64,000 bases of DNA from Camelus ferus. Lineage: Eukaryota. How positions within the stretch are numbered: the stretch's first letter is position 1; every line of letters starts with the position of its first letter. The notes beneath the pieces are model-generated. The model was given only the letters and a program-made list of their open reading frames with translations. It was not told where the DNA came from and searched no databases. The translations under genes and the position numbers were made by a program. The DNA lies in contig NC_045717.1 of NCBI RefSeq assembly GCF_009834535.1, forward strand, positions 21,390,001 through 21,454,000, read 5' to 3'. Positions 6,133 to 47,819 of the stretch are shown here, piece by piece.

Positions 6133-8991
6133 TTTTTCCTGTATCAAGACCAGCGTGGCTGGAGCTGAGTGAGTTAAAGGGAAGAGAGGGGAGATGAGGG
6201 CCCAGAGGTGACAGGGCAGATCGTGCAGTGCCTTGTGGGCAATGGTGAGGAGTTCAGCTTTTACCCCAAATAAGATGGAGCCATGACGGGGTGGTGAAAG
6301 GAGGTATTTAGCACAGGCTCTGGAACGTGGTGACTGCTCTAATAGTAGACCATTATTTCTATTGTTTTCAATTATTTTGATCATTGAAAGGGAGTCTTCA
6401 AGTGTCTATTCTCCTCGCTGCAGCTAAAGTGCTGTGGAGTGAGGAACTACACAGATTTTGCTGGCTCCTCCTTTGAAAGGACCACTGGCCACACCTACCC
6501 CAGGAGCTGCTGTAAATCCATTGAGACCGTGGCCTGTGATGGGCGCAATGTGTCCACAGATGTCATCCACCAGAAAGTAACTTGAGATTTTGTTGCGCGT
6601 CACCTGGGTAGACCCTGAGGGCTGGTGACTTCTACAAAAATTGCATTTTGGCAGGAACGCCAGTGATTTCAACCACAATTTCAGCTCATTTCGACCACAC
6701 AACCTAAGGTTACTATCCCCATTTCACAGATGGTGAAACTGAGGCCTGGGGAGGGGATTGGTTCAAGGTCACGTGGCTTTGGTTGAGCTTGAATTTGGAT
6801 CCGTGTTGGCCTGCGTCCATTGCCGGGGCCACACTGCCTCCCTCACCAAGATATTAAGCTCTAGCAATTATAATGGAAAACAATCGTTCTAACCATAGTG
6901 ATGGCCGCCATGTGACTGGGCACTCCTGCTGTGAATTCAGTCTCCATTGCACCCCTTGAAGTGGGGACTGCCCTTCTCCCATTTTACAGATGAGGAGACT
7001 GAGGCACCGAGAGGTTCTCATGGCCAGAGAGAGGTGGAGCTGGGCTTCAAACCCCATCCCTAGCTTCCAAACCCCTAACTTCTGCTGCAGATGAATGAAC
7101 CCAAGGCTCTCCCCCTGAGGGAAGAAATAAGAGTCATTTCTTAATTCATCCCTTCATATTGAATGGCTCCTGCTGGGTGCCAGGCCAGAGCCTCGGAGAT
7201 GGACATGGTGCTACACGCTGGCTCACTGTGCCTGCACAGCCTGCCTGTCAGCTCCCGACCTCCTCTCCCACTCACTCCATCACTCATTCCCCTCCAGCCA
7301 CACTGGCCTCCTCGCTGCTGCACAGATAGACCAGGCACATGCTTGCCTCAGGGCCTTTGCACAGGCTATTCTTTCTTCCAGGAATGCTCTTCCTCTAAAT
7401 GTTTTCCTACCTCACCCCTTTCAAGCCTGTGTACAATTGTCAGGCTGTTCCTGACCCCCTATCTATAAAAGGACACTGCCACAGTCACCATCACACTCTG
7501 TCTCCTTACCCTGCCTCAGGGTCTGCCCAGCACTGAATCACCACCTGACAATGTGATTACTGTACTTGTGTATTACCTGTTTTTTCCCCTCAACCCCATC
7601 AAGGCGGAAATGTCTATTTTGTATGTTGCTGGGTCTCCAGCACCCAGTCCAGTGCCCAGCACAGAGCGAGCACTTAATAAATGCCCATTAAATAAAAGGG
7701 GGACACTGACCCTTTGAGCTCAAGGCCAGTCAAGCTTCCAGAAGAAAGAGGAGCATCTCAGCGACCACAGGAAGGGAAGCGGGGGCCCATCCCCTGCAAG
7801 TGGCTGGCTGTTCTGCCCAATCACTGTCTGGTCTGTTGATCTCTCTAAACCTTAGTCTCTTCATCTGTAAAACAGAGAATAGACTAGTGCCCACCTTATG
7901 GGGCGTATAGTGAGAAAATACATGTAAATGGCTGAGAAGGTGGTGGATGCAGGTTAGCCCTTCTGTTCATATGTAAAGAGCTCTCGGAAATGACAGTTCC
8001 TGAATGCCGACTATGGGTCAGGCCACTGCTGTAGATTCTGTCTTAAACCTCACAAAAATCTTGTGAGGCAGATCCTACTGGTCTATTTACACTTGGGGAA
8101 ACCGAGGCACAGAGAGGTGTGGTGATTTCTCCAAGGTCACACAGCTAGCTTGGGACACAGCTTGGGACATCTGGTCCTGCTCTTAATCACCATACTAGGA
8201 TGTTAGCACAAATGGACACTGGGGAGGAAGTGGTATGTTCTGGAGTGGGGTAAAGGAATGAGGAGGCCAGGGAAGATGTTGGGGTGGGGGAAGCAGTCCA
8301 GCAAGAACGAGCCAAGGTCCTTGTCACTGTGTCCCTTTCTCTTCCCTGAATCTGAGAGGAATGTTGGTAGTCTGCCTGGCGGGGGGTTGATGGGGACTTG
8401 GAATCCACAAGTCCCTGACCAGGTCCTGCTTACTCTGATGTTTGTATCCACAGGGCTGTTCCCCTAAGCTCCTGAAAATAACCAAGACTCAGAGCATCAA
8501 CCTGAGTGGGGTCTCCCTGGGGGCAGCAGCAGTGCAGGTATGGCCCAGCTCCTCTGCGACACACTGAGCTCTTTCATCGAGCCCCTACTTACTGTGTGCC
8601 CAGCGCTGTTCGGGACACTGGGGACACAGCAGTGACAAAAGACAAAATGCCTGCCATGGCGGAGCTGACATGGTGGGGATGGATGACTGTTTGGTTTAAG
8701 ATACCTGCTGAGAAGGAAGTAAAAGAGGGTGATGAGATAGGGAAAGGAATCAGGGATGGCCTCCCTGAGGAGGTGAGGAAAAGCCATGTGTGTGTATATG
8801 GGAGAAGACAGAGGGAAGAGCTGGTGCAAAGGCCCTCAGGTTGGCTTTTTCAAGGACCAGCAAGGAGGCCTTTATGACTGGAGAAGGGTGGATGAGGAGG
8901 GTGGTAGGGGGAGATGAGGGCAAGGCCTTGTGGGCTACAGAGAGGGGTTTGGTTTTTATTCTGAGTATGATGGAAAGCCGTTAGAAGGGTT

Positions 8992-37200: not shown

Positions 37201-39016
37201 GAGCCCCTGTCCCCCTGGCTCTGTTCCCTGGAGCCCCTAGCCAGAGCCTTCATCGGCTCCTCAGGATTCTGGCCATGCCCCCTAGCCTCGAACGCAGTGT
37301 TCGGTTGCGTTTGGCGACTGCCACTGCCGTGTGTCCTCTGACCCATCTGGCTTTTGCAGATGTACGTGACACTTGTGTTCCGTGTGAAGGGCTCCCGCCT
37401 GGTCAAACCCTCACTCTGCCTGGCCCTGCTGTGCCCCGCCTTCCTGGTGGGCGTGGTCCGCGTGGCCGAATATCGCAACCACTGGTCCGACGTGCTGGCC
37501 GGCTTCCTGACCGGGGCGGCAATCGCCACCTTTCTGGTGAGCCTCTTAACATCTGTCCTTGTCCCAAGAGGCAGGACCATATGATGGTGAAGGGTGTGGA
37601 CTCTGTGTGATCTTGGGCTAGTCCCTTAACCTTACCTAGCTTGGACATTCTCATCTGTCAAATGGGATAACGGCACTGGGACCAGGATAAGGCAAGTGAG
37701 GCCCTCGCTTTGAGTACAGAACCTAAGAGTGCCAAAACACTCAATAATAAAGATAAATATTATTTTAATGAAGCATTTTTAAAAATTAATGCAAAAGCCC
37801 ATAATGTCCAAAACATCAAAGATTCAAATGAGGGCAGGATCAGATCCTGCTGGCACACGACTTGGCCTTGCTTATCCCCACCCTTGTGGAATAAATAATG
37901 ATAGTATCTATCCTTAGCAAAGTGGGAACAACAGGGTTCTGCACATAGTAAGCACCATTAAAGTGTTGTTTTTGAAAACCTGAGCCTCAGTTTCCCTGTC
38001 TGAAAAATGGGGATGGTAATTACCTTATTAGCCTCAGACCTCAGCCCACCCTTCTCCCTCTGTCACAGGTCACCTGTGTCGTGCACAACTTCCAGAGCCG
38101 GCCACCCTCTGGCCGAAGGCTCTCTCCTTGGGAGGACCTGAGCCAAGCCCCCACCATGGATAGCCCCCTCGAAAAGTTAAGTGTGGCCCAGGTAAGGGGG
38201 GCTGGGGGCTGCTCCCGGCTGGAGAGGGTGGTGGGTGGAGGGGAACCACGGAGGTAGACAGTCAGGCAGGAGATGGGGGGTCTCAGGGCCATGGATAGGT
38301 AGAGAGATCGCTTATCTCTGTGGATCCAGGTGTGCCCCCTTCTCCCTCCCAAGGGGACCTGGTTAATCCTGAAAACTGGTCGTCTTTTCCACTGGGTTCT
38401 CTGCCCGATGAGCCCCTCGTGGCTGTGGCCAGCGGGGCCCAGGGGGCCGCTAGCCCCTTCCCTCTGCCTCTTTGCTTCAGGAACCTGAGGCCTGCAGGCC
38501 GCATTCGACACCGGCACGGCTCACCCCATCCAGTGAGTGTCAAGGGAACGCGGGGAAGTGGGGGGACCTCCAGATGGCAGTCACTGCCACAGAGGTCTCA
38601 CCTGTGCTCTTGTGGCCCCCCTCTAATCCCCTGACTTCTGATTCCTGATCCCCAGAGCCGCAGAACTGCGCCCGCCGTGGCCACCTGATTCCCAGCTGCG
38701 TGTCGTCCAGGGCTCCAGCCATGTGTTCGTCGCCCCGTGTGCCCCGCCCTCGATTGAGGTCTGAGCCGACGCCCCTGCCTCTGCCCCTGCCCCTGCCAGC
38801 GCCAACCCCCAGCCAGGGCCCCTCCCCCTCCTCCCCTGGGCCTGGGGGGCCAGGTGGGGNNNNNNNNNNNNNNNNNNNNNNNNNNNNNNNNNNNNNNNNN
38901 NNNNNNNNNNNNNNNNNNNNNNNNNNNNNNNNNNNNNNNNNNNNNNNNNNNNNNNNNNNNNNNNNNNNNNNNNNNNNNNNNNNNNNNNNNNNNNNNNNNN
39001 NNNNNNNNNNNNNNNA
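34283..39016 (+). CDS. PLPPR2: Phospholipid phosphatase-related protein 2 (LPPR2/PRG4); long-isoform stop lies in an N gap
   Basis: Exons 34283-34348, 34863-35051, 35189-35324, 36156-36427, 37360-37536, 38069-38191 (alternative donor after 38175), 38481-38532 and 38656 onward. Short isoform is 343 aa with a stop at 38686-38688. Long isoform runs into the N gap at 38860. PAP2-like motifs are degenerate (FPCKDAA, EYRNHWSD), as known for the PRG family. AATAAA at 39948-39953. Confidence 0.95.
37673..37850 (+). mobile_element. hAT-Tip100-like DNA transposon relic
   Basis: ggataaggcaagtgaggcc followed by the AT-rich aaagataaatattattttaatg...aaaattaatgcaaaa. Confidence 0.45.
38860..39016. other. 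Assembly gap (N run) inside the PLPPR2 last exon
   Basis: 157 N following a G-rich run. Confidence 1.
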
Positions 39017-40639
39017 GAATCTACCCGGTCCCCATTTCTCCCTGCCACATGTGTGTGCGTGTGTTGTGTGAGTGCCAAAGCCCCTGTCCCCAAACCAGCC
39101 AGGCCCAGACATCAGAGGATGACTGGAAGGACATCTGAGGAACCCCCTGCCTCTCTTGCCCAATGGGACATCTTCCAAGTGGGCAAAATTGGGTGGGGGG
39201 TTCTTGCCTCCTAGGATTGACCTTTTAAGGGCCAAAGCCCCCCCCCCGGCCATTGCTCAGCCAGTGGGGGCCCCCCAGTTCTCAGAATTTTAACCAAAAG
39301 GAGTTTACTCCAGCCAATAGTAGCCTCCCCATTACTTCTTAGACTCCTCAGGCAAGTGGGCAACTCCAGCCAGTGTTCAGCATTTGAACAACCAATAAGA
39401 GTCCTTGGTTCTCAGAATTTTTAGGGTGGGTGGGTATGATTCCAGTCAATGGGGGACCACCCATGTCTAAGCATATACAAAGGAGAGGAGGGAGATGGGG
39501 TCATCCTTTGTCATTGGGTACTCTCTCCTCAGAATCAGAGTCCAGTTGGAGGGTAGGGGGCAGGCTCCCCCATGGCAAGGTCCTTGGGGTGCCCCTTCTC
39601 CTCTCTGCCCCTCCCCCACATGCAATCTCTCACCCAGTCCTCTTGACTCCTTACTTATGCAGGGCTTGCCCCAGTTCAGAGGTTTTGGGTTTCAGGGTGC
39701 TGTCTCCCCTTCTCTGTGCCCAGGCCACCTCAAATCCTTCTGTTATTTATTAGGGCTGTGGGAAAGGACTTTTTTCCCCCTTAGAACCCACCCCTGTTCT
39801 TCACACTGCCACCTATGCCTCAGCCTCATACAGTTGTGCCATCACAGAGGCATGGGTGGAGCAGAGAGGGTTCTCCACCCTAGGCAGCCAAAGGCTGTGG
39901 GCAGGGGAGACACTGCCCCCCCCCTTTCCTGCCCGCTCCTCATCTTTAATAAAGACCTGTTTGTAACAGAAGTTTGGCCACCTGCCTTCCTCTCCCAGGT
40001 GGCAGGGTGTGGAAGACTTTAATTGTGGGTCTAGGTATCAGTGAGGCTGGATGTGGAGGTATTGTCACAGTATCTAAGGGCGATTGTGGAGAAGCACTGT
40101 AGGGCTGTGGGATCTGTTACTTGGCTTCAAATCCTGGCTCAGCATTTTCTGGTTGTGTGGCCTCAGGAAAGTTCATTAACTTCTCTGTGCCCTTATTTCT
40201 TCATCTGTCAAATGCGAGCAGCCCCACAAGCCACATGTAAGGCACACAAACACACTGTGAGGGACCTCACTTGACTGTTTTCCCCAGATGGCTGGTCTGT
40301 TTCTGACCATGACCAGGGTGCAGAGAACACAGGGAATAATAGGGTGAGGGGACCCTAAATGTTCTAACGGTGAAGGGGATACTGAGGATGATAGGAACCT
40401 CCAAGCTGAACCCTTGAACTACATGGACTACAGCAGGGATTCTGATCATGAGCTTGTGCTGAGAACCAACCCCTGAGGACCCAACAGAGACCAGGGAAGG
40501 TAGTAGGAACAGGGAGCCACAGACCCCCCTCCCCCCACAAACATTTTAGCTCTAAGCAGCTTCAGACAGGCCATGCGGGGCAGAGTCAACCAGAAACTAG
40601 GAAAGGGGAGTCTGCTTTCCTTTGTTCCTCGTTTACTCA

Positions 40640-43000
40640 CTCATCCACCCACTTATTCATTCAACGAACACTGTGGGGCACCTACTACATGCCAGGTGCT
40701 ATTTAGTTAAGCACAGTGGCTGCAGCAAGTGAGCAGAACAGACACAAGATCCTGCCTTCATGGAACTCATGTTCTAACACCCGAGAGACAGACAATAAAC
40801 AAGGTATATAAGTTATACATAATACCACAGTTCCAAATTTCAAGGTCTGAAAACCAAAAATGTTTTCATAACTCATCTGTGGCAATATCTGGCCTGAACT
40901 GACATAAGGTTATTACAGTTTTTATTAATTTAACTTTATATGAATATTCTTATGTTTTGTTGCAGATAGTGTTTGGTTTCGAATGTCATCCCAGGTCCAA
41001 CTAGGGGTGTTAGTACATAGCATTACGTCTTTTGAAAATCTGAAAAATTCTGAACTCCAAACTCTAGGATCAAGGATTTAGGTCAGGGATTGAAATCTCT
41101 GATATGTTAGGTATTGATAAGTGATAAGGAGAAAACTCAAGCTAGAGAACACAATGGGGCAGCTTTGGAATAGGGACACGGTTTGCAGTTTAAAGGGGGT
41201 GGTCAGGGAAGTTCTTTTGGAGGAGTTGGCACTGGAGATGAGGTGTGAAGGAGGGAGGGAGAGGAGCCAGGCAAATATGCGCGGTCAGGGGCGGAGGAGA
41301 GTTCCAGACAGAGGGTGCAGCAAGAACCAAGGCCCTGAAGTGGAAACGTGTCTGCTGTGTTCACGGAACAGTGAGGAGACCTGTGTGGCTGGAGCTGAGC
41401 CAGCGAGGGGCAGAGGGAGAGGAGGTGGGGGAGGTGGTGGGGTTGATTGTGGGCCCCAGGGGAATTAGATGGGAGCATGAGAGGGCTGAAGGCAGAAGAG
41501 GGACAGAATCATGGAGTCCCCTGCTTCACCGCCCAGAGCTCCTGTTTCCAGGGATTGCACCCTTGAGACCCGTGGTCCCTCCTGTTGCACAGCTGCTACC
41601 ACTGCGGGCAGGGAAAGAAGCAAGACTTCAGCACGGTGGACAGCGCCCACCAGCCAACCCAGTTGGCGCTGTCCATGGTTCTGATGCTAAGCACGAGCTA
41701 GGAAAGGGAAAAGTCGGGGCCGCCAGAGGAGACAGCAGCCCTGGTCTTGCCCACACCCCACCCTAGGCTGGAAACTCTTAGGTAGAAACTCCAGACTAAA
41801 GTGTGCTTTCTTATTCAAAGGGCTTCTTTAATTGACCCAGTGGGTCTCATAGCCTGTCAAACTCAAAGGGACCAAAACCAAGCTCTGCTTTACAATGTAA
41901 GTCAGACCACAACCCTCCTCTGCTCAAACCCTCTCAGGGCTCCCCATGGCACTCTATGTAAAAGCCAAAGTTCTCCCAGTGCATCCAGGCCTTTACACTT
42001 GCAGGTGCTTCCACCTGGAATGGTCTTCTCCCACATATCTGCATGGTTCACCTCCTCAGCTCCTTCAAACCTTTTCTCAAATGTTACCTCCTTAGTGAGG
42101 CCTGCCCCTACCATCCTATTCACAATTGCAAGAACCAAACAACTAGCCTTTCTAACTTCCCTGTGCTAACTTTTTTTCTTCTTTCACACACTTATCATCT
42201 GCTCATAGACTATTTAAACTTCTCTTTATGCTTGGTGGCCATTATCTCCTCCCTCACTAGGATGTCAGTCCTCCAGGACAGAGAATTTTTGTCTTTTCAC
42301 TGCTGAACCCCTGTGCCTAGAACAGAGCTGGCCAGGCACACAGTAGATGCTCAAGAAATGTTTGCTAAATGAATGAACTAATCACTGGAGGATGCTGATA
42401 AACCAAGGAGAAGCACACACTGAACCTGAGCTGTCCACTTCCCTGTACCCTCACCCTTCAGTCCTGCCTCCTTCAGGGAGTCCCTCTATGGTAAGGTTCC
42501 TTCTATCAGGATGTGAAAATGGGATCTGGAGAAGTGAAAGAAAGAAGTACTGTGTTCATGAGAGATACACCGAATGTCTGCATCTCTGCAATGTACTCAC
42601 TCAGCTACATTTAGGAGCATCTACTGTATGCCAGGTGCTATTCTAGGAGCTGGGGACCCAGCAGTTAAAGAAAGATGGACTCTACTCTGGTGGAACTGAC
42701 ATTCTAGTGGGGAGAGAGGCAATCAAATTACTATATAAGGTTGGAAGTGATGAGTTGTTTGAAGAGAAAGATGATAAGCAGTTAGAATAAAGGAGGTGTG
42801 ACTTTACACGGGTGGCCAAGGAAAGCCTCTCTAAGTAGGTGATATCTGAGCAGAGACCTGAATGGAATGAAAAAAAAATGAGGAAGCTCTGGGAGCTGAG
42901 TGTTCTAGGCAAGAGAACAGCAAGGCAAAGGACTTGAAATGGGGCTATGTTTGGCATGCTCCCATGTACAAAACTGCGGAACTGCAATACGGGTGTCACT
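40640..43000. mobile_element. Cluster of L2 fragments and a Tigger-like relic flanking a unique island at ~41480-41800
   Basis: L2 3' motifs (cattcattcaacgaacact, gggtggtcagggaag, aggcctttacacttgcaggtgcttcc, aagcctctctaagtaggtgatatctgagcagagacctgaa). The Tigger-like stretch is at ~40830-41080. Confidence 0.65.
41627..41685. promoter_or_regulatory. Inverted pair of REST/NRSF RE1 silencer elements
   Basis: TTCAGCACGGTGGACAGCGCC (+, 41627-41647) and ATCAGAACCATGGACAGCGCC (-, 41685-41665), each one mismatch from NTCAGCACCNNGGACAGCGCC. Confidence 0.85.
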
Positions 43001-43087
43001 ACTAGGTGCCTGTGCATTTAGAGTGTTGCAAAGTGAGGTGAATCATGGGGCTGAGGTAGTGCATTTGACAATGCAATCTAACAGTGT

Positions 43088-43132
43088 GCTGTGTGTGTGC
43101 GTGCGTGTGCGTGCGTGTGTGTGTGTGTGTGT
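43088..43132. repeat. (TG)n/(TGCG)n microsatellite
   Basis: Directly visible alternating purine-pyrimidine tract. Confidence 0.9.
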
Positions 43133-44149
43133 AGAGGGGTGTGGGGGTGCCTAGCTGTGTGAGTGGGTGTATCATAGGATGTTGTTCAGCTGTGTTCTGG
43201 CCCCAGAGGGAGAGCGAAATCCCTGGAAATCACAGTTCTGCCCTGCCCCTGGGTCTCCTGGCAACAGCACCACTTTGAAGTTACCAGGAGACAGAGTTGC
43301 CAGGGCAACAGGGGCATGAGTGGCTGCTCTGGGGAGAAGTCTAGGTGAAGAGACCCAACCAGTGATCACTTGATCACTCACTTTGTTCCTCCTTCTCTCC
43401 CAGTTTTATATCGATCCTCCCTTCTTTTCTTCACTCACTCCTTTAATGAAACTCTATTGAGAATCTACAAGGCGCAAGGCACTGTTCTGGGAGCTGGAGA
43501 TACCAAAGTGAACGTGACAAACAAGGTCCTGTTGTGGCTCTCCCTCAGTCTCCCAGCCCCTGCCCCTTTGCCTCGTTTCTTCTGGCCCCTTTTTTGTTCC
43601 GTGGTCCTGCCTTCCCCCACCCTCGTACCCCAAGCAGGACTCCAGCAGGCCCCCAATCAGTGAGGAAGCTGAGACTCCCCTTCTCAGATCCTCGGAGGTG
43701 GCTGCTGCTGTTTTGCACACGAAAATCCACAAGCCTGCAGGCCCAGACAAACACTTGTGCAGGTACTCAAAAGCAGAGAGTGGAGCACACAGCTCATCCA
43801 TCTCTCCACCTCTCCACTGTCATTGGGTGACATCAGCAGAAACACAGATACATGCTCATCACAATATTCTTGAGATATCATGAGCTCCATATTACAGGTG
43901 AGCAAACTGAGGCTAGGAGACTTTAAGTAATGTATCAGTGATTAGGGCCTGCTCCCTCCAAATCTTAGCCCTTATGTTGTCTGATTAGCTGATTAGCTCA
44001 CAATAATAGTATTCGTGCTGCTTCCGCCGGCGGACTCACCCAGGGAAGAACCTTATCTCCCTCAAAAGCCTCCTTTTCTTCCTCAGACTAGGTTATTTGC
44101 CCCTTCACCAGGGAGGAGCTAGGAAACGTCGATTTGGCTTTGATGAACA

Positions 44150-44257
44150 GATCCTTGGACCAATGGAGAAGCTAAGTGCACTGTAACCAATGAGACCTCA
44201 TCTTGGGCGGGATTAAAGACAGGAAGGGGCCGCCGATTGGACAGAGGTACGCTGCGA
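44150..44257 (+). promoter_or_regulatory. SWSAP1: SWSAP1 promoter (NF-Y/Sp1 type)
   Basis: CCAAT at 44160 and 44187, GGGCGG at 44205 and ATTGG at 44236, immediately upstream of the ATG at 44258. Confidence 0.65.
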
Positions 44258-45607
44258 ATGGCGGAGACGCTGAGGCGGGTGCTCAGCTCAGGCAGCGCGG
44301 CTGGGACCGGGGAGGGGAACACAACTGAGGTCGGACCGCCTTTGCTGCTGCTCGGTGGCCCAGGCTCTGGAAAGACAGCCCTGCTATTCGCATCGGCCCT
44401 GGAGGCGGCAGGGGAGGGTCGAGGCCCAGTCCTTTTCCTGACCCGGAGGCCTTTGCAAAGCCTGCCTCGAGGGACTAGAGCCCCTCTCGAACCGCTGCGG
44501 CTACAGGTAGGGAGAGGCAGGACCAGAGGCGGACCAACCAGTAGCGGGGCGGATGGGGGAGTAACAGGTAGGCCGACCTATGGCGGAGACGAAGGAGGGG
44601 CAAGCCAGAGCAGCCTTTACGGGATAGATTCTGGAATGAGTCGGGGGTGGGACCATGCGAAGCTTTGTTAAGATTGAGTGAGAAACTACCCAATGATGGG
44701 GCGGAATTAGCAAAAGCCTGTGCCAAAAGGGTGGAGTCAGGGGCGAGGAAGGGGTGGGGCTAAATCTGGGTCTTGTCTTGGTTGGAGTTGGTTTCTGGGC
44801 AGCCAGAGTTAATGATAGGGTCCGACGCTACGGGCGGGTTTTCTGTGGAAAGACTGCCCTAGAGATTTGGCAAAGACGTACCTTTTCTCAACTAATACCG
44901 GCCAGTGGTGAGCGCTGTATTAAAAAGAAGGGGGAAGGAGAGGCGCAATCAGAATAGTATTCAACTACTCTGAACAGCTTCACTCTGGAATCACCGTCCT
45001 GGGGAGTGAGAGCCTCGTCCAGGAAAGTATGCAAGGAAGCAAACCGTCTATAGCTGGGAGCCTGGCTTCCTGTGCTGAATCTGACCCTTTCCTTTTTTCC
45101 TCTCTGTAGAAGATCCGCTTCCAGTACCCACCCTCAACCCGTGAGCTCCTCCGGTTCCTGTGCTCTGCCCATGAGGCCCGGGGGCCAGTCCCCTCTCTCC
45201 TGCTGCTCGACGGCCTGGAGGAGTACCTAGCAGAAGACCCCGGGACCCAGGAAGCTGCCTACCTGGCTGCCCTGCTTCTGGACACAGCTGCCCACTTCAG
45301 CCAGGTTGGGCCTGGCGGGGGCTGTGGGCTCATTGTGGCCCTCCAGACCCAGGAGGGAGACAGTGGGGATGCCCTGCAGCTTGCGCTGCTCCAGAGGTAT
45401 TTCCCTGCCCAGTGCTGGCTGCAGCCGGATGCACTGGGCCCAGGTGAGCACTGCCTCCGAGCCTGCCTGGAGCCAGGTGGGCGGGGCCCTAGGGCAGAGT
45501 GGTGGGTGGCTTTCCGACCAGATGGAGAGATGACAATCACCCCATGCCCCCACCAGCCTAGTAACCCCAGCTCAGACAAGGGTTCAAGCTCTGGAGGCCA
45601 GCCTTGA
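44258..45607 (+). CDS. SWSAP1: ATPase SWSAP1 (RAD51 paralog, Shu complex), 248 aa
   Basis: Exons 44258-44506 and 45110-45607. Walker A GGPGSGKT, Walker B LLLLD, C-terminus KGSSSGGQP*. Confidence 0.96.
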
Positions 45608-46295
45608 GCTTTGGTGTGTGACAAGCTCTCTGTGCCTCAGTTTCCCATGACTGGAATACCTACCTCAGGGACATGAGCAGATTCAAAGACCTAAAGATTA
45701 TAAAGTGCTTTTTTCTCTTGTAAACATAGCATTTTCACATCCATATTGTGCCCAGTCAATGTGTTGTTTAATTTTGCTGTTTTGAACTTTATAAAAAGAG
45801 TTTCATGATAAATGTAATCTTCTTAGACTTCCTTCTTCTCCTACTCAGCATTGTCACTAAGATAGGGCCACATTTTTTTCACTCACTCCTTTTTCCCTAC
45901 TGCATATAATTCCGTGGGTGACTATACCCCAATTTACTCATCAGTTTGGCTTACTTACTGCTATTAACATTCTTGCAGACATGTCCTGGTTCATGTATTC
46001 GAGGGGTTTTAGGGTAGATACCTAGAAGTGGAATTGCTGGGTATGTTCATATGTTCAGCTTTCCTAGGTTATGTGAAACTTTTAAAAAGTGGTTAAACCC
46101 AAACTCCCAATTCTAGCCACTTGATGACATTCGGTGTCATCAGAGTGCTTTCTTAGAACAGGGCTGATTCAGAATAAAGCCTTATGAATGCATGTTATTG
46201 TTGTTATTAGTGGCAGGGACTAGCTGGCGTTTCATTAAACAGCTTTTCTCTCCTGGGTGCACAGCTAAACTACATTTCCCAGCTGTCCATGGTTC

Positions 46296-46935
46296 TGTTA
46301 GAGGAGCCAGATAGTTAGATATGAGCAGAGAAAGGAGGACGCAGGCCAAATGGCAGGAATTGGGCAAAAATGGAGGAGCACAGGCCAAATGCAGAAAACC
46401 ATACAGCATGTAAACAACAGGGGTCCCTGGGCAGAGAAGGAAAAGGAGGAACCTCTGGGCTGATAAGAAACCACACATTTTGGGGTGACAAGTGGCCTGG
46501 AGGCCAACAAAGAAAGGTGGGAAAAGGCAAGAATCTCTAGTGTCCGAATGTAACCTTTTGCAACTTATGCCCTCATTACAATAAAATTAGCTTTGCAGAT
46601 AAGAAGTACCCATCATGCGCCGATGCCATGACACTTCCGATCCAAACTAAATAAGGATAAAAATCCATCTTCCCTTTGGGAAGGTGTAGTTGGGATGAAA
46701 ATCAGGGAATACAAACCCAAACCCTTCCCTCCCCAGTGAATAGTCTGCTGATTCATTTTTACGCTCTATGTAACCAACTTGCCAAAGAAACTCAGGGCAG
46801 CCACTCACTTGAGCCTGCCTGCTCTCCCAAGTGTACTATCTATCCTTTAATAAATCCCCATTTTACTTTCTTAACCTCTATGTCTTGTCTCTGAATTCTT
46901 TCTGCGACGAGACAAGAACCTGATCATTGGCAACA
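46296..46935 (+). mobile_element. ERV1-type solo LTR inserted in an MLT1 relic
   Basis: TGTTA...CAACA ends, AATAAA at 46849 and the U5 text ctctgaattctttctgcgacgagacaagaacc. Flanks GTTC/GCTC may be a 4-bp TSD with one mismatch. Confidence 0.75.
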
Positions 46936-47257
46936 GCTCTAGCCAGGGTCTTATGACCATTTCTGGCCAGGAGAATTTGTGAAGAGAGAGCACTCACCCC
47001 TAGGCTAGATCCCTAAAATGGCCCACAGAATATTCTGCTGTCTCCCTCTTTGCTTGTTGGTTGGCGAGATGCAGATTATCCATCTAAAGGCCCCAGAGTT
47101 GCCCTGGGCAAAGCCACAGTCTGGCCTTCTGACTCATCCCAGGGATAGCTGTCACCTTGTTTCAATTGAGATATGAGGGAAAACATTTACTATGTTAAGT
47201 CACTCAGATTCAGGAGTTGTTTGTTAGGGCAGCTAGCATAACTTATACTGACTAATT

Positions 47258-47422
47258 CATTTTATTTTATTTATTTATTTTTCATTCTTTTTTTAAAAGC
47301 TTTCTTTTGGGGGGAGGGAGAAATTAGGTTTATTAATTTTTTTTAATGGATGTACTGGGGATTGAATATAGGACCTTGTGCATGGTGAGCACATGCTCTA
47401 CCACTGAGCTATACGCTTCCCC
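47258..47422 (-). mobile_element. tRNA-Ala-derived camelid SINE, followed by (ATT)n at ~47435-47480
   Basis: gtactggggattgaatataggaccttgtgcatgg...ctctaccactgagctatac. Confidence 0.85.
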
Positions 47423-47819
47423 TAAATTCACTTTATTATAATTATTATTATTATTATCATTATCATTATTATTATTATTATGGCCAGATCAGAATTTCAG
47501 ACTGAACTCAAGGCCTTTTTGGCTGCCCCTATGGTCTGGGCCTAGGGAAAAGATGGGGCTTACAGGGTATTGATAGAAGTCATGACAGAAAAACTTATAC
47601 GTGTTTATATATATTATATATATATCTACATAGAAAACTGTACATGTAAAAATAACTGCAAGGTTGTGACTTTTTGAGTAGGATGAATTGAGCCGAAAGC
47701 CAAGGTCAGCAACGCCTCTAGTCCTGAGGGAGGCCACACTGACGCTGCCTGATAAATCTTGGGTCTGCAGTAGCACTTGAGGTCACACTGGGTCCCCCAA
47801 GCACCTGAGGACTGGAGTC

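Follow-up and report, generated by a model that had tools for sequence, protein, structure and literature searches.

Two inverted RE1 sites lie between PLPPR2 and SWSAP1

We analyzed a 64,000-nt stretch of the Camelus ferus genome (contig NC_045717.1, positions 21,390,001 to 21,454,000; here called the window) that contains the genes PLPPR2, SWSAP1, and EPOR. Between PLPPR2 and SWSAP1 lie two closely spaced sites matching repressor element 1 (RE1, also called neuron-restrictive silencer element or NRSE), the motif bound by the repressor REST. Open reading frame (ORF) translations place the PLPPR2 exons at about 34.3-38.9 kb on the plus strand and EPOR at 47.8-52 kb on the minus strand. SWSAP1 coding exon 1 (44258-44515, plus strand, with its ATG at 44258 and an approximate end) shares 98% identity along its length with SWSAP1 of Camelus dromedarius. 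The RE1 pair is ~1.68 kb past the AATAAA at 39948-39953 (plus strand), which is likely the PLPPR2 poly(A) signal, and is beyond both PLPPR2 AATAAA signals. The SWSAP1 start is 2.6 kb downstream of the pair, while the PLPPR2 start is >7 kb away. Thus, the AATAAA and the ORF translations bear out the location given in an earlier, model-made reading of the same DNA (the sequence-only reading), which had put the pair 1.7 kb downstream of PLPPR2 with SWSAP1 and EPOR as neighbors.

RE1 is a 21-bp bipartite motif in which a left half (TCAGCACC) and a right half (GGACAGCGCC) are separated by a 2-nt gap. Using the published degenerate (IUPAC) RE1 core, TYAGMRCCNNRGMSAG, as the scoring standard, we found that both sites belong to this class. 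Site 1, proximal to PLPPR2 (41627-41647, plus strand, TTCAGCACGGTGGACAGCGCC), has a single mismatch to the core, a G in place of the second C of CACC, with the result that position 9 of the motif (C to G) is suboptimal. Site 2, proximal to SWSAP1 (41665-41685, minus strand, on which it reads ATCAGAACCATGGACAGCGCC), has no mismatches and is the better and more conserved site. The two are convergent, with their GCGCC tails facing each other across a 17-nt spacer (41648-41664, no strand assigned). They share a perfect 11-nt inverted repeat (TGGACAGCGCC at 41637-41647 and GGCGCTGTCCA at 41665-41675), and the longer inverted arms of the pair span 23 nt and are 83% complementary. The sequence-only reading had this geometry right (two inverted 21-bp RE1s, 17 nt apart, with a perfect 11-bp repeat in common), but its count of one mismatch in each site holds only for site 1.

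In the whole window, nine matches to the RE1 core have at most one mismatch, compared to 1.31 expected from shuffled sequences. From this expectation, we calculated that a second site on the opposite strand would fall within 60 nt with a probability of ~0.001, making the pair roughly a 1-in-1000 event.

Rightward of the dyad, 644 nt match two dromedary assemblies without a difference, which marks the window as Camelus DNA. The PLPPR2 gene call in one C. dromedarius assembly (GCA_000803125.3; L002:1-7446) has 713 residues and extends through the RE1 pair, while the model in the other dromedary assembly has 471 residues; the 713-residue model is probably an over-extended prediction. A scan of 39000-47500 detected no Rfam family.

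REST occupies the mouse ortholog of the pair

The orthologous mouse sites are present in Dataset S1 of Johnson et al. (2008, PLoS Biol, PMC2573930), which lists two RE1s 5 bp apart. One of these, mus18091 (TTCAGGACCGTGGACAGCACC, chr9:21700901-21700922, score 0.947), is the ortholog of camel site 1, while mus18108 (GTCAGCACCAAGGACAGAGGC, chr9:21700927-21700948, score 0.949) is the ortholog of site 2 (PMC2573930). The annotation places both 3′ proximal to BC018242 and Epor and 5′ proximal to C19orf39 (Swsap1) (PMC2573930). The camel and mouse 21-mers are identical at 18 of 21 positions for site 1 and at 16 of 21 for site 2. We take BC018242 to be the old symbol for mouse Plppr2, an assumption that fits the neighbors C19orf39 and Epor. 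In both species, the pair is ~1.5-1.7 kb 3′ of PLPPR2 and 5′ of SWSAP1, with a plus-strand site followed by a minus-strand site. The mouse pair differs in having a spacer of 5 rather than 17 nt and in carrying the consensus C at position 9 of site 1. Since the lower-coordinate site of the sand rat, Psammomys, is on the plus strand, orthology suggests that the convergent orientation holds in murids too.

Chromatin immunoprecipitation followed by microarray hybridization (ChIP-chip) gave enrichments in E14 embryonic stem (ES), NS5 neural stem (NS), and NIH3T3 fibroblast cells of 7.44, 7.08, and 6.35 for mus18091 and 5.52, 4.87, and 5.09 for mus18108, all with p = 0 and a false discovery rate of 0 (PMC2573930). 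Most bound sites among the entries listed have enrichments of 1.5-5 (PMC2573930). The minus-strand mouse site is also the canonical motif of the paired-end ditag (ChIP-PET) clusters 9.21695 (ES) and 9.21697 (NS); the latter, an NS5 cluster 1546 bp 3′ of BC018242, contains 38 overlapping tags, and the cluster in Snap25 intron 1 contains 37 (PMC2573930). In the neural stem cell (NSC) sheet of the same study, BC018242 is upregulated 1.485-fold with dominant-negative REST (DN:REST) (PMC2573930).

The proposal in the sequence-only reading that the pair is a REST silencer is thus supported for its mouse ortholog, which is strongly occupied in ES, neural stem, and NIH3T3 cells and lies next to a gene that is modestly de-repressed by DN:REST. 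The camel pair is real and conserved. Since its mouse ortholog was catalogued and found to be REST-bound in 2008, we rate the element as largely known.

The mouse pair appears in supplementary tables only, and the paper does not comment on its inverted arrangement (PMC2573930). A search for PLPPR2/LPPR2, SWSAP1, and EPOR found none of them in the supplements of four papers on human REST (PMC4055426, PMC3320604, PMC9903721, and PMC11025195; C19orf39 was searched for in the first two only), which is not evidence of absence. Dataset S1 contains another mouse RE1 pair at chr5:112959104-112959166, in which mus10759 and mus10758 are 41 nt apart, start to start, in an intron annotated MY018B, with enrichment of up to 12 (PMC2573930).

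Both sites are conserved in placental mammals, site 2 more strongly

Using SWSAP1 protein anchors, we sampled the PLPPR2-SWSAP1-EPOR interval of camel, humpback whale, arctic fox, plains zebra (Equus quagga), Myotis bat, woodchuck (a marmot), sand rat, elephant (Loxodonta), armadillo, bushbaby (Otolemur), and platypus. Scanning for the motif revealed both sites with at most one mismatch in camel, whale, fox, bat, woodchuck, sand rat, and armadillo, always in the order plus then minus, and the orientation was convergent in every sampled species possessing both sites. A pattern scan of metagenome contigs recovered a further mammalian ortholog with the pair (contig L016).

Alignment of 11 mammals revealed that 12 of the 21 columns of site 2 were invariant, compared to 3 of 21 in site 1, 3 of 100 and 6 of 100 in the 100-nt flanks, and none in the spacer, where the mean share of the majority base was 0.59. 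These counts indicate that the motif is under stronger purifying selection than its flanks. Site 1 was present in 10 of the 11 aligned mammals. In E. quagga (L005, about 7155-7175), a clean ~21-nt deletion takes out exactly this site, leaving site 2 and the spacer intact. Site 1 has two mismatches in Loxodonta, and its position 9 is A or G in all sampled Laurasiatheria, Xenarthra, and Afrotheria and C in Euarchontoglires. In Otolemur, a 1-nt deletion has damaged site 2, and site 1 is perfect. From this alignment, site 2 appears to be the invariant anchor and site 1 a partner that has been repeatedly weakened or lost, which is a small new point.

The spacer is 15-17 nt long in non-murid placentals, 3 nt in Psammomys, and 5 nt in mouse. 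Of the two properties for which the sequence-only reading had looked to conservation, orientation is therefore maintained across placentals, while spacing is not.

Two other features of this region were observed. The 20 nt immediately upstream of site 1 (41607-41626; GGAAAGAAGCAAGAC in camel) are conserved to a similar extent as site 1, with a mean majority share of 0.80 compared to 0.56-0.71 in the wider flanks, and may be a site for a further factor. Additionally, a third RE1-like site (46279-46299, minus strand, AACAGAACCATGGACAGCTGG) is found between the 3′ ends of SWSAP1 and EPOR. This site has an exact 16-mer in common with site 2, has at most one mismatch in camel and fox and two in whale, and is absent in the other sampled mammals.

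The platypus interval contains one canonical RE1 (L012:4357-4372, minus strand, CTCAGCACCAGGGACAGCTCC), situated 5.6 kb upstream of SWSAP1 within a GC-rich tract. At 31 nt upstream of this RE1 (within L012:4290-4380), the string GGACGGCGCC-CAACC resembles the right half of site 1 together with the start of the spacer. BLAST comparison of the platypus RE1 region with the placental region showed no orthology.

The convergent arrangement is mildly unusual among RE1 pairs

All 27 human RE1 pairs reported to lie within 100 bp of each other are head-to-tail (P = 7e-9; Johnson et al., 2006, NAR, PMC1557810). The tandem pairs of SNAP25, L1CAM, and KCNN4 resemble the PLPPR2 pair in having two full RE1s within 100 bp but are head-to-tail on the same strand, while the PLPPR2 sites converge (PMC1557810). 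Since the PLPPR2 pair lacks the same-strand orientation of the tandem class and all 27 human pairs have it, the camel arrangement is atypical and mildly unusual. The two RE1s of KCC2/SLC12A5 lie on either side of the transcription start, a long way from each other, whereas only 17 nt separate the PLPPR2 sites, both of which are 3′ of the gene. What KCC2 has in common with PLPPR2 is the association of two RE1s with one neuronal gene (reviewed in PMC7730145 and PMC9305173). Non-canonical RE1s with convergent or divergent half-sites also place oppositely oriented RE1 parts within one REST peak (Johnson et al., 2008; PMC11025195); however, these are single sites with one half flipped, while the PLPPR2 locus contains two complete canonical 21-mers facing each other.

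A phrase search of the literature found no paper describing RE1 pairs that are inverted or palindromic. In metagenome contigs, one pattern scan recovered three other convergent, near-perfect pairs with 14-21 nt spacers (L013:4453-4513, L014:1040-1093, and L015:1286-1346), all on unrelated, CpG-depleted contigs from a single sequencing project (MDSQ01). Thus, convergent RE1 dyads recur. In L015, the palindrome reaches ~12 nt past each RE1 (a 92-nt arms region, 78%). The PLPPR2 pair has kept its orientation since before the placental radiation, but we consider it very unlikely that such dyads form a distinct architecture that was selected as such. If they do, a single co-repressor assembly might serve both of the REST molecules that face each other, and a dyad placed between a 3′ end and the next promoter might separate the chromatin states of PLPPR2 and SWSAP1 as a direction-independent block.

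Neither a functionless repeat by-product nor a functional palindrome is a likely explanation of the pair

The RE1 pair is flanked by copies of an old interspersed repeat. The left copy (41182-41436, minus strand) has many non-orthologous matches in the window and at other loci. The right copy belongs to the same family (41980-42137, with a tail segment at 42249-42377, plus strand); it also has many interspersed copies, and its tail, the only part with hits in the platypus locus, matches seven copies there. This repeat is probably L2-like, in line with the call made in the sequence-only reading. Between the two copies, 41437-41979, which holds the RE1s, had no matching repeat copy anywhere in the ~320 kb that we sampled. 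The pair therefore does lie in an island without repeat matches between repeats, as had been described, but the island is ~540 nt long rather than ~300 nt.

Inverted alignment of the flanks (41115-41409 and 41913-42197) placed the matching segments at 247-541 and 257-541 nt from the dyad center, nearly mirror images of each other. The alignment score was 88 in the window, compared to a null of 29 ± 4.5, and 151 in a 10-species consensus, compared to 29 ± 3.6. We considered an ancient inverted duplication centered on the pair and rejected it, as the arms match a common interspersed family, resemble each other no more than they do unrelated copies (67% alike, compared to 70-76%), and are not significantly alike in their inner 35-250 nt (P = 0.07). 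Since the arms resemble unrelated copies more than each other, they would derive from two independent repeat insertions rather than from a local inverted duplication, and the mirror symmetry of the repeats looks coincidental.

These repeats raise the possibility that the pair is a by-product of transposable elements, arising from two L2 copies or an inverted duplication and having no selected function. About one RE1 in seven overlaps or flanks a LINE2, and one RE1 family lies inside the L2 coding region (Johnson et al., 2006, PMC1557810). The inverted copies at near mirror-image distances fit this idea, and the PLPPR2 pair resembles the LINE2-associated RE1s in having an old interspersed repeat within a few hundred nt on both sides. 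It differs from them in that its RE1s sit in sequence without detectable repeat copies. That difference, the dissimilar inner arms, and the greater likeness of the outer arms to unrelated copies all speak against such a by-product. Whatever their origin, which may be L2, the RE1 sites have been conserved much more strongly than the repeat arms, and REST binds them in mouse, making a functionless by-product highly improbable.

The sequence-only reading had also suggested that the palindrome could extrude as a cruciform or, if transcribed, form a hairpin RNA. The single strand does fold stably (-17.4 kcal/mol, compared to -8.9 ± 2.0 for shuffles; z = -4.3), but any two inverted copies of one motif would yield such a fold. 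The right halves of the two sites are identical in camel, whale, fox, and bat, with parallel changes to GCGCT in fox and GCACC in bat; although noteworthy, two cases are too few to carry weight. At nine weakly constrained motif positions, the two sites agreed within species in 36 of 81 comparisons, while permuting species gave 34.2 ± 2.6 (P = 0.30). Since agreement is at the permuted expectation, nothing maintains complementarity beyond the shared motif, and we rejected selection for a hairpin or cruciform. Tail complementarity has in fact been lost in five of nine species (marmot, sand rat, mouse, elephant, and armadillo). A loop of 11-17 nt disfavors cruciform extrusion, and neither the Rfam scan nor the position of the pair beyond both PLPPR2 AATAAA signals favors a structured transcript. 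It is thus barely credible that the palindrome itself is functional as cruciform DNA or hairpin RNA.

An anchor and an auxiliary site probably bind REST independently

REST contacts DNA with its zinc-finger array, one molecule per RE1, and recruits Sin3/histone deacetylase (HDAC) and CoREST complexes. In non-neuronal and progenitor cells, these complexes deacetylate the surrounding chromatin and compact it. A model that accommodates the data is that the camel pair is the ortholog of an ancient, constitutively REST-occupied element in which site 2 is the anchor, site 1 is auxiliary, the two bind independently, and PLPPR2 is the likeliest target. We consider this model likely to be correct. One REST molecule would occupy each 21-bp site, and the recruited co-repressors would keep nearby chromatin repressed outside neurons. 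Site 1, as the weaker and partly redundant partner, would raise local occupancy. PLPPR2 would be repressed from its 3′ side, with a modest effect.

Because the spacer shrank by ~12 nt in murids with binding still among the strongest in the mouse dataset and drifts between 15 and 17 nt elsewhere, and because the Equus lineage has lost site 1 altogether, the two sites would act additively, without a fixed geometry. For the same reasons, the high-avidity, cooperative double silencer envisaged in the sequence-only reading is doubtful.

PLPPR2 is expressed through development and adulthood in the hippocampus, neocortex, olfactory bulb, and cerebellum (PMC9520309). We regard this gene as the likeliest target, although the effect in mouse is small and the SWSAP1 promoter is nearer.

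Several observations weigh against this model. REST occupancy in camel is predicted from the motif and the mouse ortholog. Nearly all listed bound mouse sites have C at motif position 9, where camel site 1 has G, so that REST binding to this camel site may be weak or absent. The orientation of the second mouse site is also indirect, as its plus strand comes from orthology with Psammomys and is unstated in the dataset. The response of BC018242 was small (1.49-fold) and seen in one cell type, with the site 12 kb from the transcription start. Finally, PLPPR2 is not strictly neuronal, as it is also expressed in microglia, cancers, and muscle (PMC9520309).

The state of site 1 leads to the most serious competitor of the anchor-and-auxiliary model, that only site 2 works and site 1 is a decaying relic or low-affinity bystander, leaving a functionally single RE1. 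The gap in invariant columns between the two sites fits this idea, as do the deletion of site 1 in Equus, its mismatches in Loxodonta, and its non-consensus position 9 across the sampled Laurasiatheria, Xenarthra, and Afrotheria. However, apart from position 9, the site 1 core CAG..AC...GGACAG has been kept in 10 of 11 mammals over roughly 100 million years, far better than the spacer and flanks, and Otolemur shows the reverse case, with site 2 as the damaged one. Both mouse sites have RE1 matrix scores >0.94, with the higher enrichment at the probe near site 1, although ChIP cannot resolve sites 26 bp apart. On balance, a single working site is possible but unlikely. Less likely still is that the element is bound by REST but serves another target: SWSAP1, EPOR, or a repressive chromatin boundary between the genes. 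Such a role would be consistent with the shorter distance to the SWSAP1 start and the small response of BC018242 to DN:REST, and REST represses best from promoter-proximal sites, according to the title of Figure S13 in Johnson et al. (2008, PMC2573930). Yet SWSAP1, a RAD51-paralog partner, and EPOR are non-neuronal genes. When we searched the DN:REST tables (Dataset S5) for BC018242, Lppr2, Plppr2, Swsap1, Epor, and Prg4, BC018242 alone was found; C19orf39 was not among the names searched.

Discussion

PLPPR2 has been described as the least studied member of its family (PMC9520309). The link between this gene and REST sits in the supplementary tables of 2008, and our literature search found no main text connecting PLPPR2 or LPPR2 with REST. 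The pair provides a clean example of a REST element that has been conserved for roughly 100 million years and can be detected from sequence alone. To what was known, our analysis makes small additions: the conserved convergent orientation, the pattern of an anchor plus an auxiliary site, and the collapse of the murid spacer by ~12 nt without loss of binding. Together, these features suggest that paired RE1s act additively rather than through a fixed geometry.

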